The notes beneath the pieces are model-generated. The model ran no database searches and had not been told where the DNA came from. It saw nothing but the letters and a program-made list of their open reading frames with translations. The position numbers and the translations under genes are program-made. Below, piece by piece: positions 29,915 through 35,836 of a stretch of DNA of 64,000 nt. Within the stretch, counting starts at the first letter, position 1; each line of letters starts with the position of its first letter. This DNA comes from Salpingoeca rosetta (Eukaryota > Protista > Choanoflagellata): positions 320,826 to 384,825 of the forward strand of contig JAWQFM010000025.1 of the NCBI GenBank assembly GCA_033442325.1, read 5' to 3'.

Positions 29915-32900
29915 GCTCAACAACTGCCAGCTCAGGGGTGACAGACTGCAGGCCCTTCTCGATGCACTCCGCGGCAAAACCACCGTTCAATCCATCAAGT
30001 AATGCTGAGCGTTTTGCGATGTGTATTTGGGATACATACACGTGGACATGTCACAAGTGTGTTGCCACCGTCACCCATCAACCATGAACGCTGCTGGCCC
30101 ACTCACATGCTTGCAGGCTCTCCTACAACGACCTGGGTCCTGACGGCATGGAAGTGCTTGCTCCAGCGCTCTCCCAACTCAAATCCCTCACATCCCTTGA
30201 GTACGTTTGGCGGTGTATCTGGCGTACATGGAAACTCAGAAATGAGCACCGCCCCCACACAAACACACACACGCACACACACACACACACACACACACAC
30301 ACACACACACACACACACACACACACACACACACACACACACACACACACACACACACACACACACACACGCAATCACCCACCCACTCACTCACTCACTC
30401 ACTCACTCACTCACTCACTCACTCACTCACTCACCCACTCACTCACTCACTCACTCACTCACTCACGCACACTCACTCACTCACTCACGCATGCACACAC
30501 ACTCACACACTCACTCACGCACGCACACACACTCACTCACGCACGCACACACACACTCACTCACTCACACACTCTCCCTCGCTCACTCACCCACCCACAC
30601 ACTCTCTCCCTCACTCACTCACTCACTCACTCACTCACTCACGCACTCACTCACTCACGCACGCACACATACGTTGCAGAGTGGCCAACGACGACATTCA
30701 TGACGCGGGTGTCACGCACATCACAAGTGCGCTGATGAAACTCCCGGGTCTCACACGCCTCAGGTTTGTCCCCGTGCGTGGTGCTTGTGCTGCTTTGCAT
30801 CATCGTGTTGCTGACCTGCAAGCGCGTTACCTCCTCTTGCCACATATCCATACCCTGGTGCCTCACACGCTTCCTCAACCCGCTCGCTCGCGCGTTGATG
30901 CGTATCCAATCAAACGCCCACAGTTTGGATGGTGCTGGCTTATCTGATGCAGGGCTGGAAACCCTGGCAGCGGCACTCCCATATCTACCAGCGTTGACAC
31001 ACCTGAGGTGCGTGCCTGCATGCACTAATTGATGCGGCAAATTTGGCTGTGACCATTTCGCTTTGCGCCCATATACACTTCTGAACACACACACACACAC
31101 ACACACACACACACGCGCACACACACACACACACACACACACACACACACACACACACACACACACACACACGCATTATAGCATTATGGGTACACTTGTC
31201 CCACACGCACGCCTTTACCACGACTCACAATGCATGTCACGTTACATCTGCTTCGCTCGCAGTCTGACCAAGAACATATTTGGTGATCGTGGCGCGACGG
31301 CCCTTGCGCACGCTGTCAAGCAGCTGCCATCGCTCTGCGTCTTGCGGTACGGTGTTGCTGCATCACTTAATGGTGTCTGTGTCTGCCTGCCTGCCTCTGT
31401 GTGTGTGTGTGTGTGTGTGCATGTGCGTGTCTGTCTGTCTGTCTGTCTGCATGTGTAGATGGTCGTTTCTGACACTTCACATCTGTTGTGCTTATAACTT
31501 GGTAGGCTGAGAAACAACAAAGTGGCACAGCAAGGTGCAGCGGCACTGGCCGAAACGTTGCGCACCTCCAAGTCTCTCAATACCCTCGAGTGCGTCTGCT
31601 GGTGCAGCTGTCCTTTGATGTTGTTGTATCCCCTTTCGCCTTTGTGCCACCAACACACACACACACACACACACACACACACACACACACACACACACAC
31701 ACACACACACACACACACACANNNNNNNNNNNNNNNNNNNNNNNNNNNNNNNNNNNNNNNNNNNNNNNNNNNNNNNNNNNNNNNNNNNNNNNNNNNNNNN
31801 NNNNNNNNNNNNNNNNNNNNNNNNNNNNNNNNNNNNNNNNNNNNNNNNNNNNNNNNNNNNNNNNNNNNNNNNNNNNNNNNNNNNNNNNNNNNNNNNNNNN
31901 NNNNNNNNNNNNNNNNNNNNNNNNNNNNNNNNNNNNNNNNNNNNNNNNNNNNNNNNNNNNNNNNNNNNNNNNNNNNNNNNNNNNNNNNNNNNNNNNNNNN
32001 NNNNNNNNNNNNNNNNNNNNNNNNNNNNNNNNNNNNNNNNNNNNNNNNNNNNNNNNNNNNNNNNNNNNNNNNNNNNNNNNNNNNNNNNNNNNNNNNNNNN
32101 NNNNNNNNNNNNNNNNNNNNNNNNNNNNNNNNNNNNNNNNNNNNNNNNNNNNNNNNNNNNNNNNNNNNNNNNNNNNNNNNNNNNNNNNNNNNNNNNNNNN
32201 NNNNNNNNNNNNNNNNNNNNNNNNNNNNNNNNNNNNNNNNNNNNNNNNNNNNNNNNNNNNNNNNNNNNNNNNNNNNNNNNNNNNNNNNNNNNNNNNNNNN
32301 NNNNNNNNNNNNNNNNNNNNNNNNNNNNNNNNNNNNNNNNNNNNNNNNNNNNNNNNNNNNNNNNNNNNNNNNNNNNNNNNNNNNNNNNNNNNNNNNNNNN
32401 NNNNNNNNNNNNNNNNNNNNNNNNNNNNNNNNNNNNNNNNNNNNNNNNNNNNNNNNNNNNNNNNNNNNNNNNNNNNNNNNNNNNNNNNNNNNNNNNNNNN
32501 NNNNNNNNNNNNNNNNNNNNNNNNNNNNNNNNNNNNNNNNNNNNNNNNNNNNNNNNNNNNNNNNNNNNNNNNNNNNNNNNNNNNNNNNNNNNNNNNNNNN
32601 NNNNNNNNNNNNNNNNNNNNNNNNNNNNNNNNNNNNNNNNNNNNNNNNNNNNNNNNNNNNNNNNNNNNNNNNNNNNNNNNNNNNNNNNNNNNNNNNNNNN
32701 NNATCGGCAAGACAACGATGATCAGGTCACTGCCGGGCAAAACCGGGTACATCCAGCATCTCATCTACCACGTGATGCAGCCTGCCAACGAGCCAGACCG
32801 CGCCGAGGAGCGTACACCAGGGATCAAGGTGTGCGATATGGTCATCAGGGACAGGGGCAGCGGTGAAGCTGATGAGGTGGCATCCCTTCGCGTGTATGAT

Positions 32901-35836
32901 TTTGGCGGGCAGCTGGCCTATCACGTGATCCACACGCTGATGATGTCGGACAGGCTTGCCGCCTTTGTTGTCTGCGTGGACCTCTCGCAACGCGAGCAGC
33001 ACGTGAAGGAGCGCGCCAACTACTGGCTGCAGTTCATCTGCACGCGCCTGCAACAAGGGATGGCTGCCGCTGCCAACTCCATTGGCGCAGCCCCAATGAC
33101 GGAGGTGAAGCCACGCGTGATCATTGTTGGCACGAAGAAGGACCTCGCGTACAAGAACAATCTGGTGGACGCCGACGGGCATCCCACGTGGGGTAAAGCC
33201 ATGATGGCAGACCTACAGGACACGTTTGGCCATATCATCGACATCCACAGCACCCTCATTCGCTTCACGTGCTTCCTCGACAAGGGGCGAAACTTCAACG
33301 CCCTCCGCCTTGAGCTTGTGCGTCACTGGCGCTGGCTGAAGGACCGTCAGCTTGAGGTGCCAAAAGTGGTGTCAGAGGTCGCCGCCATTCTGAAGACCGC
33401 ACAACTGGAGTGCCCCCTGTGGAAAGTGGGTGACCTGCTCGAGCGCGTCCACAAGAGCAGCGAACACGAGTTTGCCGTCACCGCCGCCCTTCCCGAAAAC
33501 ATCTTTCATCTCACGTTGCGGTACGTGTTCCACGCATCCCTGCCCGCACGCAGTCGTGTTACGCATCATGTTGTTGTTGTTGTTTCAACAACGTTGCATC
33601 TTCTTGCCCCCCCCCCAACTTGTCTATGCTTTCGACACCGTACATCATCGTGCGACTTCCCCCTCCTATTGACTACTGACTCACGCAAACATGTTGCTTT
33701 TGTATGCACGCATGCAGGTATCTGCATGCACGTGGCGATCTGCTGTGGTACTACAAACTCCCGTCGCTCGCTGACGTGGTCTTCCTTTCACCCAACTGGC
33801 TCTTGCATGACGTCATGGGCAAGGCATTGCAGCCCAAAGGCGTGGCGTGTGGGGGCCTTCGGCCCAAAAGGGGCGTGGTCAGCTTCAGCGACATTTCAGC
33901 AGCGTTCGAAGGCATCGCAAGTCCCGAATTGGTCATCAGCATCCTCCAGCACGCACTCCTGTGCTTCGAGCTGCCGCAGAATGAGCGGGGCCGGCGCCGC
34001 TTCATGCTTCCGAGCCGCGTGGAAGAGGATGTCGATGTGGACAAGGAGTGGCGACAGCACGAAGATGACGATGACCATGACAACTGGGCCGTGTACGGAG
34101 GGCGCCGCCTGAAAGTGACCGACGACGCACTTGCACTCCCACCTGGGTTCTTCCCACACGTGCAGACCCGATTGCATAGCAAGTTTCGCACGCCCCCAGA
34201 CATTTGGAGGAATGCGTTTCGGTGCGAGTGGAGAGGCGTACAGTGCTTTGGCCTCCAGCGTGGTGATCGGGAGGTGGACGTATGGGTACGCGCACGTGAA
34301 GGGGCAACAACACACGCGCTTCCATGTTTGACAAAGGTAAGTTTGTTTGTTTGTTTGTGTGTGTGTGTGTGTGTGTGTGTGTGTGTGCATGTGTGTGCAT
34401 GTGTGTGCATGTGTACATGTGTGTGTGTGTGCATGTGTGCATGTGTGTGTGCTTGTGTGTGGTGCACTTATGTCTGAGCCGTGCCTGTTTATGATGCACG
34501 TCTGCCCGAACCCAAATTTTGCTCTGCCAAGCTGTGCCCCTTTAATGCACCTCTCCCCCGCTGTCTTCCAGCCCGGCTGCCTTCCAAACCCTTCCCCTCC
34601 CCCACCCCTCTTTACTTCCCTCCTCTTCGCTTCTTCTTTCACAGACAGTCCCTCTCTGCCAGTGCTCACTTCATTTCCGCTCTCTCCGTCCCCATCACCG
34701 AATGACAGGTGTTCTCACTGCTGCAGGAGGAGGCCCGTGGCATTGACAGCCATCACATTGTCCTGAGCCCAAAGCAGCTGAGGCAGCACGTGCCAAAGCC
34801 CATCGGCTATGCATTCGACGCCATACACAATCAACCGCCAAACGAATTTGTCGAGTCCTCGTACCACGACCCAGGACAGTCGGCACTGTCTGAGCGCGTG
34901 TACGACCTGCTGATGCTGCCACCCGAGCGACCCGACTCCGCCATGCCCACGTGGCAGTGCCCCGGGTATGAATGGCACCATCCAAGTTGGCGGCTCGACG
35001 ACACGCTGGATGAGCAGCTCCGCTGGTCTGGCCCGAACGCCCACCGCACGTACACGGCACCCTTGCCACCTAATACCCAACTGTACGAGTGGGTTGAAAA
35101 GCAAATGGCACCAGGAATGTCGCTGTCTCGTGTTGAGGTGACAAAGTCAGCGACCATGCTGCAATTATTCAACGGGCGCCTGGCGCAATGTGCGAGCCGG
35201 CGCGCATCCCCGAACAGCCCACACTTCAACCGCACCTTTGACTATGACCGGGACAAGAAACGCATGGTCGAGCAGCTCAAAGCTCAGTTTGCGCAGACTG
35301 GTGAAGACGTGGAGCATGTCAACGTCCTCATTGCATGGCACGGGTGCTCTGTGTCCAACATTGACGCCATGGCCAGCGAGGGGCTTGCCAACCTCAGCAA
35401 ACCTGCTGACCGCGGCTTCTATGGAGCCGGCATCTACGTGACCCCGCAGGCTGGCTACGCGGCTGGCTACTCAACCCGGCTGCTGCCTGGCACCTGGGAG
35501 GCGCCAAATTCGCGCGGAGAGCACGTGCTTTTGCTGTGTGCTGTCAGCATTGGCCTGGCGCAACCAATCACCAGGCAGGCGGATTACAACGAAGCCAGCA
35601 GGTGTAAATGGTTTGGCGAGCCAATCAAGGATGGATTTGATGCGCGGTATGTGCAGGTGTTGAGTTCCGACAACTTCCAAGCCACACCAACACCGGGCAC
35701 GTACAATTTCGAGGAAATTGTCGTGTCGCAGGAGGCCCAGGTTCTGCCCATCGCCAAGGTCTTCGTTAAGGTGAACAGGGACGAGCTTCGCGATTACCTC
35801 GCATCACCACCCCCCGCGCCAGCGCCAGCGCCTTGA
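29915..35836 (+). CDS. LRR-Roc-COR-PARP-like ADP-ribosyltransferase (ROCO-ART); 5' end and LRR/Roc junction fall in gaps
   Basis: Six 84-nt ribonuclease-inhibitor-type LRR exons (29915-31589). After the gap: Roc (GKTTMIRSL, RTPG, YDFGGQ, IVGTKKD) and COR exons 32703-33520 and 33718-34336. The last exon 34709-35836 carries IAWHGCS, GFYGAGIYVTPQAGYAAGY, LLLCAVSIG and FEEIVVSQEAQVLP. Confidence 0.82.
31722..32702. other. Assembly gap separating the LRR exons from the Roc exon
   Basis: Run of N. Other gaps: 22394-22549, 29237-29784, 35947-36046, 44264-44659, 47445-47580, 52406-52579. Confidence 0.99.

Follow-up and report, generated by a model that had tools for sequence, protein, structure and literature searches.

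A choanoflagellate gene joins a ROCO GTPase module, very probably preceded by leucine-rich repeats, to a predicted PARP-type ADP-ribosyltransferase

In a window of 64,000 nucleotides from the choanoflagellate Salpingoeca rosetta (assembly GCA_033442325.1, contig JAWQFM010000025.1, positions 320,826 to 384,825 of the forward strand), the locus at window positions 29915 to 35836 encodes a Roc GTPase domain, a COR domain, and an ADP-ribosyltransferase (ART) domain. These three modules belong to a single gene, as in the public annotation, where it is named PTSG_09169. Six leucine-rich repeat (LRR) exons lie just upstream, and it is very likely, from comparison with paralogs, that all of the modules form a single LRR-Roc-COR-ART polypeptide. 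On balance, we favor a cytosolic ROCO protein of roughly 1,150 to 1,200 residues, encoded by one gene that is split by two assembly gaps. An initial annotation of the DNA had proposed this fusion. Its Roc-COR-ART part was confirmed by the exact match to PTSG_09169 and by a COR-B helix that spans an exon junction, while we infer the LRR join in PTSG_09169 from six complete S. rosetta paralogs.

The last exon (34709 to 35836) is 100% identical in a protein search to residues 475 to 849 of PTSG_09169 (XP_004989423.1; 849 amino acids; S. rosetta ATCC 50818, scaffold GL832983.1), which is labeled “hypothetical protein” in public databases and carries the automatic UniRef name “Poly [ADP-ribose] polymerase.” The annotated gene corresponds to window positions 32718 to 35836 and starts at the first methionine past the downstream gap (MIRSL...). 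Splice joins at 33520|33718 (phase 2) and 34336|34709 (phase 0) yield exactly the PTSG_09169 protein. In the frame that follows the gap, Pfam matches were obtained to Roc (E value of 7e-7), COR-A (1e-6), and the PARP catalytic domain PF00644 (3e-9). The PF00644 match comes after Roc-COR, as expected if an ART replaces the kinase of LRRK-type proteins, which is what had been claimed initially; LRRK and DAPK proteins have a kinase where PTSG_09169 has its ART.

The last exon opens in phase 0 right after a stop codon, and its first methionine is codon 59. Because the phase-0 junction follows a stop and the exon contains no ATG in its first 58 codons, Roc to ART can be read as one gene; that the mapped paralogs share both intron positions leads to the same reading. 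The ART exon is not a separate gene, since one folded COR-B domain is encoded across the exon junction. Every exon that can be seen is open, with 855 codons in addition to the six LRR exons; all splice sites are canonical, and identity to the paralogs is even across Roc, COR, and ART. The introns are short and rich in CA/GT microsatellites, as befits a choanoflagellate. Introns throughout the gene and the pattern of one LRR per exon rule out a bacterial contaminant or a recent transfer.

The visible part of the Roc-COR switch module runs from the right flank of the downstream gap into the last exon, as follows.

32703-33520, + strand: Roc GTPase exon and first part of COR-A (Pfam Roc; donor phase 2)
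32703-32717, + strand: G1 motif, partial, IGKTT (second half of the P-loop)
32808-32825, + strand: switch I threonine motif, ERTPGI
32895-32912, + strand: G3 motif, YDFGGQ
33129-33143, + strand: G4 motif, GTKKD
33718-34336, + strand: COR exon with the rest of COR-A and most of COR-B (Pfam COR-A; donor phase 0)
34337-34708, + strand: intron between the COR and ART exons (in-frame TGA right before the acceptor; GT-rich stretch at 34380-34467)
34709-34780, + strand: end of COR-B, comprising the second half of its last helix and the terminal strand (first 24 codons of the last exon, placed from a paralog model)

The visible G motifs of PTSG_09169 are all intact (IGKTT, the switch I threonine in RTPGI, DFGGQ, and TKKD). 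The first half of the P-loop lies under the gap; the paralogs read GDYGIGKTT there. Recognizable motifs in the COR exon include YLHARGDLLWY in COR-A (33719 to 33751), WAVYGGRRL, LPPGFFPH, and EVDVWVRAREG. A single-sequence search of Roc-COR against solved structures gave no match, and a profile was needed: the family Roc-COR profile matched LRRK2 residues 1329 to 1618 with an E value of 5e-10 and also matched Methanosarcina barkeri Roco2 (MbRoco2) and Chlorobium tepidum Roco (CtRoco). When a profile of the whole family was run against the PDB, the output was dominated by LRR proteins and was uninformative on Roc-COR.

For structural comparison, an AlphaFold2 model of Roc-COR was built on the homologous segment of the paralog PTSG_13043, which is 56% identical (mean predicted local distance difference test [pLDDT] score of 79.8). 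This model superimposed on Roc-COR-A-COR-B of LRRK2 (residues 1329 to 1815) with a Z score of 25.4 over 427 residues and a root mean square deviation (rmsd) of 3.6, on C. tepidum Roco (residues 434 to 900) with a Z score of 23.3, and on LRRK1 with a Z score of 21.9. The junction between the COR and ART exons falls at model residues 489/490, inside a COR-B helix that runs from residue 480 to residue 497, and the alignments extend to residues 510 to 515. Pfam COR-B had no match in the LRR-Roc-COR-PARP subfamily; COR-B is nonetheless covered, as the model can be aligned as far as residue 1815 of LRRK2 and residue 900 of CtRoco. With Roc, COR-A, and COR-B all found, PTSG_09169 belongs among the ROCO proteins.

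The remainder of the last exon encodes a linker and the putative effector domain.

34781-34945, + strand: linker of ~55 residues from COR-B to ART (pLDDT mostly 34 to 76 over model residues 1 to 78; mean paralog identity of 0.47)
34946-35836, + strand: predicted PARP-type ART module and short tail (last-exon residues about 80 to 358)
35339-35341, + strand: putative catalytic His211, in AWHGC (motif at 35333-35347; aligns to the His of tankyrase-1 FHGS)
35423-35470, + strand: Tyr-pair motif, GAGIYVTPQAGYAAGY in the letters of the window
35435-35470, + strand: Tyr243 to Tyr254, Y-X10-Y (GIY...AAGY; aligns without gaps to tankyrase-1 GAGIYFAENSSKSNQY)
35714-35716, + strand: putative catalytic Glu336, second E of NFEEIVV (motif at 35705-35725; aligns to the Glu of tankyrase-1 YAEYVIY)
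35834-35836, + strand: TGA stop codon of the ART module, after the short tail

Among the paralogs, the linker is the least conserved segment (0.47 mean identity). Low model confidence together with low conservation suggests a flexible tether rather than a rigid interface. Beyond it, the AlphaFold2 model of the ART domain had a mean pLDDT of 86.6 and a predicted template modeling (pTM) score of 0.80. A single-sequence search of the PDB with the ART domain had as its best match plant SRO1, with an E value of only 0.25, so that here too a profile was needed. Structure prediction for 34709 to 35836 followed by a Foldseek search upheld the initial assignment to a PARP-like fold, with PARP2, PARP4, PARP1, and tankyrase at the top of the PDB matches (E values of 1e-10). 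Model residues 80 to 358 aligned to PARP15, TNKS1, and PARP12 (VIA-align) with Z scores of 17.6 to 17.8 and rmsd values of 2.4 to 2.8 over 172 to 187 residues; the overall ranges for the tankyrase, PARP15, and PARP12 catalytic domains were Z scores of 17 to 18 and rmsd values of 2.4 to 3.0 over 172 to 201 residues. In the ESM Atlas, all neighbors of the ART domain with a recognized catalytic family belonged to PARP clusters.

The motifs named in the initial annotation (WHG for the His, a Tyr pair, and FEEIVV for the Glu) were located in the window as AWHGC, GAGIYVTPQAGYAAGY, and NFEEIVV, and the triad it described as intact His-Tyr-Glu (H-Y-E) is in register with tankyrase-1 at His211, Tyr243/Tyr254, and Glu336. 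We scanned 1.84 billion representative proteins with the ART domain and retrieved 522 relatives at an E value of ≤0.001, 56 of which were aligned. Tyr243 and Glu336 are conserved in 56/56 of the aligned relatives, Tyr254 in 51/56, and His211 in 49/56. The family profile aligned WHG to FHGS, GaGiY...Y to GAGIYF...NQY, and fEElVV to YAEYVIY of tankyrase-1, and because of this alignment we take the second Glu of FEE to be the catalytic one. Fold and triad together place the modeled domain in the PARP/ARTD superfamily, in no recognized clade. It has a family-specific N-terminal extension (residues about 80 to 135). There were no Pfam matches to WGR or helical regulatory (PARP_reg) domains in PTSG_09169 or its paralogs, and a DNA damage PARP of the PARP1-3 type was ruled out for lack of these domains.

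The ART domain of the family is probably catalytically active, and the PTSG_09169 copy somewhat less certainly so. Where other PARPs have the nicotinamide-anchoring Ser, which we take to be PARP1 Ser904 and TNKS1 Ser1221, PTSG_09169 has Ala251, and Ala occupies this position in 55/56 relatives. The substitution is compatible with activity, since bacterial H-Y-E toxins likewise lack the Ser. Two residues set this copy apart: Gln285 (35561 to 35563) and Arg313 (35645 to 35647), in place of a Tyr and a His that each occur in 51/56 relatives. In every other S. rosetta paralog, the corresponding motifs read AYP and D-x-H. The H-Y-E triad is required for chain elongation and yet is not enough for it; H-Y-E alone cannot tell whether the product is mono- or poly-ADP-ribose.

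Upstream of Roc, the six LRR exons are flanked by the two assembly gaps.

29237-29784, no strand: assembly gap upstream of the LRRs, at the probable place of one or more 5′ exons
29915-29998, + strand: LRR exon 1 (84 nt, AG/GT borders, phase 2-2)
30117-30200, + strand: LRR exon 2 (84 nt, AG/GT borders, phase 2-2)
30680-30763, + strand: LRR exon 3 (84 nt, AG/GT borders, phase 2-2)
30924-31007, + strand: LRR exon 4 (84 nt, AG/GT borders, phase 2-2)
31263-31346, + strand: LRR exon 5 (84 nt, AG/GT borders, phase 2-2)
31506-31589, + strand: LRR exon 6 (84 nt, AG/GT borders, phase 2-2)
31722-32702, no strand: assembly gap between the LRRs and Roc (left flank, intron; right flank, interior of the Roc exon)

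Each 84-nt exon encodes one 28-residue LRR of the ribonuclease inhibitor (RI)/NLR type, and the complete protein would have about seven such repeats. The best match to the window LRRs was repeats 1 to 6 of the paralog PTSG_10355, with 56/160 residues identical in an ungapped alignment. In the paralogs, a conserved exon 1 lies ~300 nt 5′ of the first LRR exon. A tblastn search with paralog N termini against window positions 26000 to 29999 gave only chance matches and no exon 1 homologue, and the gap at 29237 to 29784 probably hides the 5′ exon or exons, with the start codon and about 41 to 62 N-terminal residues.

At the downstream gap, the left flank (31590 to 31721) consists of a GT donor followed by a CA repeat and is thus intron, and the right flank enters the Roc exon in the middle of the P-loop at 32703. 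Frame continuity across this gap is moot, because one flank is intron and the other is exon interior. The paralogs offer a guide to what lies within. In PTSG_13043, which is ungapped, the same interval is 660 nt long and contains a capping-repeat exon of 84 nt, a second exon of 90 nt, and the 38 Roc codons that precede GIGKTT; two further paralogs share this layout between LRRs and Roc. The interval in the window (31590 to 32702) measures 1,113 nt, of which the gap length is an estimate, and has room for exons of the PTSG_13043 type. We estimate from the paralogs that the gap conceals about 95 to 110 residues, which would make up a capping LRR, a linker, strand 1, and the P-loop as far as its midpoint. 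They are probably encoded by one exon for the capping repeat, another of ~90 nt, and the 5′ part of the Roc exon.

PTSG_09169 belongs to an expansion of about nine LRR-Roc-COR-PARP-type genes in S. rosetta. A Roc-COR search retrieved PTSG_08728, PTSG_09285, PTSG_10355, PTSG_13043, PTSG_09099, and PTSG_08520 at 55 to 59% identity and PTSG_07288 at 31%; ART searches added PTSG_05784 and the fragment PTSG_11448. Identity to the paralogs over the ART domain is about 52 to 55%, and H, Y, and E are kept in 7/7 of the close paralogs that were aligned. Six ungapped paralogs (PTSG_13043, PTSG_10355, PTSG_08728, PTSG_09285, PTSG_09099, and PTSG_05784) have the complete LRR_6-Roc-COR-A-PARP arrangement in 1,101 to 1,250 residues, whereas in PTSG_08520 the LRR is missing along with the beginning of Roc. 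The mapped loci of PTSG_13043, PTSG_09285, and PTSG_09099, in which the repeat-rich exons were mapped by splice-motif scanning, show the same intron positions and exon pattern. All of these paralogs are unnamed hypothetical proteins in databases.

The more distant PTSG_07288 is without an ART and has LRR, Roc, COR-A, and COR-B after an N-terminal stretch, in which residues 20 to 112 give a weak TIR_2 match (E value of 0.0085, 17 bits) that is below the Pfam cutoff. If this match were real, S. rosetta would have the same chassis with a second type of NAD+-consuming effector.

Relatives were also found outside S. rosetta. A homologue from Barroeca monosierra (1,516 amino acids) has the LRR-Roc-COR-ART layout and matches across LRR and Roc-COR with an E value of 7e-30. 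Degenerate versions of the P-loop, G3, and G4 are found in this homologue, which has Met in place of the catalytic His but keeps Tyr and Glu, and it may represent a pseudo-GTPase or pseudoenzyme branch. A transcript from Salpingoeca infusionum combines COR-A with an ART of the PTSG_09169 type, and an unplaced Logan contig combines Roc and COR-A with such an ART. Elsewhere, the ART clade is fused to ARM repeats, actin/Arp3, PH, ANF-receptor ligand-binding, NHL/EGF, FG-GAP, and DUF4116 repeats, mostly in unplaced protist or metagenomic proteins, and the clade is present in a centrohelid. Judging from these fusions, the divergent PARP-like clade seems to be an output domain that has been shuffled widely.

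Of the folded domains, the LRR diverges most from paralog to paralog (mean identity of 0.51, versus 0.70 for Roc, 0.63 for COR, and 0.68 for ART), and the variation is concentrated on one face. Across 30 pooled repeats, the x positions 2, 3, 5, 7, 8, and 10 of LxxLxLxxNx had entropies of 2.6 to 3.6 bits, and positions 15 to 28 had entropies of ≤2.2 bits, mostly <1.7. PTSG_09285 lies on the scaffold that also holds the window. Eight of its 84-nt LRR exons in a row (locus positions 2154 to 4151) are nearly codon identical on the helical side, with 15/27 codon columns invariant in amino acid. For five preselected concave codons of these repeats, dN (nonsynonymous divergence) was 0.93 and dS (synonymous divergence) was 0.26, a dN/dS ratio of 3.6, compared with a dN of 0.06, a dS of 0.18, and a ratio of 0.34 for the other 22 codons; these ratios compare repeats of a paralog, not alleles or orthologues, and the pairs are not independent. 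Among all 80,730 five-column sets in PTSG_09285, the preselected concave set had the highest proportion of nonsynonymous differences (pN). Between PTSG_09285 and PTSG_09099, dN/dS was 4.2 at concave positions and 0.46 elsewhere. The pattern in PTSG_09285 suggests recent exon duplication or gene conversion combined with selection for change in the binding face, and by analogy it matches that of LRR receptors with a diversifying binding face.

By analogy with bacterial Roco proteins and LRRK2, in which nucleotide state is coupled to COR-mediated dimerization according to a Roco review (PMC6337361), a mechanism leading from LRR to ART can be proposed. The LRR would bind a ligand or a guarded partner, and binding would shift the nucleotide or dimer state of Roc-COR. 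This change might free the tethered ART domains or bring them together, and the ART domains would then spend NAD+ to ADP-ribosylate targets or themselves.

The protein can be placed among known systems by what it shares with each. With LRRK2 and LRRK1 it shares the order LRR-Roc-COR-A-COR-B. It differs from them in having no kinase, WD40, ankyrin, or armadillo domains and in having LRRs of the RI/NLR type (LRR_6), and its output is an ART on a flexible-looking linker of ~55 residues, whereas theirs is a kinase packed on COR-B. C. tepidum Roco has the same LRR-Roc-COR core (the Z score of 23.3 given above) but no enzymatic effector domain. It reportedly undergoes a GTP-driven change from dimer to monomer and is said to be the best-studied switch model for the LRR-Roc-COR chassis. 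The catalytic domains of tankyrase, PARP15, and PARP12 share the ART fold, with H-Y-E and Y-X10-Y in register in the case of tankyrase-1; in contrast to these, the S. rosetta ART has 16 to 20% identity, Ala for the nicotinamide-anchoring Ser, and an N-terminal extension. The helical regulatory, WGR, SAM, ankyrin, macro, and WWE domains of the PARP family are absent from PTSG_09169.

The initial annotation had likened the layout to that of an NLR. As an analogy of layout this holds: both have a sensor LRR, a nucleotide switch, and an effector; the LRR type is that of NLRP, NOD, and ribonuclease inhibitor; and one repeat per 84-nt exon, family expansion, and diversifying LRR selection are common features. 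It does not extend to membership. For its switch, PTSG_09169 has a Ras-like GTPase with COR where NLRs have a STAND ATPase; the LRR precedes the switch at the N-terminal end, whereas that of NLRs is C-terminal; and PTSG_09169 had no match to NACHT or NB-ARC. An NLR identity was ruled out by the absence of a STAND ATPase; the protein is an analogue, not a member.

The closest described analogue appears to be bacterial LRR-Roc-COR-TIR. Kaur, Iyer, Burroughs, and Aravind (2021, PMC8195603) describe prokaryotic LRR-AP-GTPase(Roc)-COR proteins with about 24 alternative C-terminal effectors, including TIR and caspase, as predicted conflict systems. In a string search of the supplementary tables available for that paper, “COR+TIR” occurred 581 times and “COR+CASPASE” 36 times in the source data file, and “COR+ART” and “COR+PARP” had zero occurrences. 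Bacterial LRR-Roc-COR-TIR proteins resemble the S. rosetta family in joining variable LRRs, Roc-COR, and a C-terminal effector in one polypeptide and in having several paralogs per genome, and TIR, the commonest effector there, consumes NAD+ as well. The bacterial LRR-Roc-COR-effector systems are prokaryotic, unlike the S. rosetta family, which is eukaryotic and intron rich, with one LRR per exon and a PARP-type ART. No description of a Roc-COR-PARP fusion was found in the literature searched, which left most subscription journals outside the search, and no paper was found there under the gene and UniProt identifiers of PTSG_09169. PARP or ADP-ribosylation is not mentioned in the Roco review (PMC6337361), nor are GTPase or LRR partners in two PARP phylogeny papers (one of them PMC4245714). 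This agrees with the statement in the initial annotation that no functionally characterized protein of this architecture was known to it. As far as we searched, the LRR-Roc-COR-PARP family is present in databases as unnamed hypothetical proteins and is otherwise undescribed and uncharacterized.

How firmly the gene can be read as an intact LRR-Roc-COR-ART receptor depends on several points, some of which weigh against that reading. The join of the LRRs to the Roc exon would lie inside a gap, and the public annotation makes LRR exons 2 to 5 a separate gene of 118 amino acids (30148 to 31510). We consider it very unlikely that the LRR exons are foreign to PTSG_09169, belonging either to a separate short LRR gene or to a misscaffolded 1.9-kb contig of another truncated paralog, such as PTSG_08520. 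The 118-amino-acid model, the gaps on both flanks of the LRR contig, and the fact that PTSG_08520 is likewise without LRR and Roc start would fit such an origin. However, the exons are on the same strand, in the right order, and at paralog-like spacing. Every complete paralog has the LRR directly 5′, with the same exon pattern in three mapped loci, and Roc begins in the middle of the P-loop, so that upstream coding sequence must exist. The 118-amino-acid model itself needs an internal Met (that of repeat 2) as its start and an alternative last exon for a stop, the TGA at 31508 to 31510, which lies in a frame other than that of LRR exon 6. Most probably, the gap has led to a prediction artifact here, though an LRR-only short isoform may instead be behind the model. 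Other adverse points concern function: half of the P-loop is all that is visible, Ala251 replaces the anchoring Ser, and Gln285 and Arg313 are unique to this copy, albeit outside the H-Y-E triad. Being the sole paralog with Gln for Tyr in A-Y-P and Arg for His in D-x-H, and having LRRs far from the homogenized consensus of the other paralogs, PTSG_09169 could be a decaying or catalytically silent copy (a pseudoenzyme or a young pseudogene), whether or not the family is active, and loss of GTPase motifs and of the catalytic His does occur in the family, as seen in the B. monosierra homologue. We regard this as improbable, given that every visible exon is open over 855 codons and six LRR exons, with canonical splice sites throughout; that neither H, Y-X10-Y, and E nor the visible G motifs are disrupted; and that the level of identity to the paralogs stays even from Roc through COR to ART.

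If PTSG_09169 is an intact LRR-Roc-COR-ART protein, its role has to be weighed separately. By analogy, the chances are about even that it acts as a receptor of the sensor-switch-effector type in conflicts with microbes or viruses rather than as a component of housekeeping signaling; gene family expansion and positive selection on the concave LRR face strengthen an immune role. More specifically, and more tentatively, we speculate that the family is a choanoflagellate class of cytosolic innate immune receptors on a ROCO rather than a STAND chassis, in which diversifying LRRs would sense a microbial or viral cue, Roc-COR would alter its oligomeric state, and the ART would ADP-ribosylate host or invader targets or deplete NAD+. 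An alternative hypothesis, which we consider less likely, is that the same protein serves endogenous signaling as a GTP-regulated ART acting on cytoskeletal, trafficking, or developmental targets, much as LRRK2 and the Dictyostelium Roco kinases act by phosphorylation, and is not an immune receptor. Known functions of eukaryotic ROCO proteins are of this kind, those of Dictyostelium and animals being mostly cytoskeletal, trafficking, and developmental signaling according to the review (PMC6337361). The joining of ART clade relatives to actin/Arp3, PH, ARM, and receptor ligand-binding domains points the same way, since fusions to actin/Arp, PH, and ARM modules fit housekeeping regulation equally well; Perina et al. 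tie S. rosetta PARP-actin fusions to the cytoskeleton (PMC4245714). RI-type LRRs are also frequent in ciliary proteins, and the repeats of PTSG_09169 itself, with saturated synonymous sites (dS of 2.2), are too diverged for a dN/dS estimate. Endogenous signaling accounts less readily for about nine paralogs in one species, for an LRR that is the fastest-evolving folded domain, and for dN/dS values well above 1 that are restricted to its concave face. The related ROCO protein with a weak TIR-like N terminus (PTSG_07288) and the bacterial counterparts that join the same chassis to TIR or caspase likewise favor the conflict receptor.

Interest in ROCO proteins stems mainly from LRRK2 and its part in Parkinson's disease, and debate continues over the way in which Roc-COR controls an attached catalytic domain. 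The S. rosetta family offers a natural experiment, in which the LRR-Roc-COR chassis would drive an H-Y-E ADP-ribosyltransferase instead, in an organism that is open to transfection and genome editing. For PARP biology, a GTPase joined covalently to the enzyme would be a novel type of upstream regulator. If the immune reading is true, GTPase-gated NAD+-consuming immunity, predicted so far only in bacteria (LRR-Roc-COR-TIR), would also exist on the stem lineage of animals. Considered alongside LRR-Roc-COR-TIR proteins of bacteria, the family raises the possibility that receptors combining a sensor, a GTPase, and an NAD+ enzyme are an old immune design; because of the family expansion and the LRR selection pattern, this can be tested in the unicellular organisms most closely related to animals.

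Two neighboring genes on the + strand flank the locus. Upstream, a gene at ~24718 to 28518 has a Tweety (PF04906) match and a faint Prominin match in the precomputed contig annotation and is read as a Tweety-like membrane protein. Downstream, a single-exon gene at 36743 to 38185, annotated with 480 amino acids, encodes ~11 C2H2 zinc fingers (zf-H2C2_2, E value of 5e-77).

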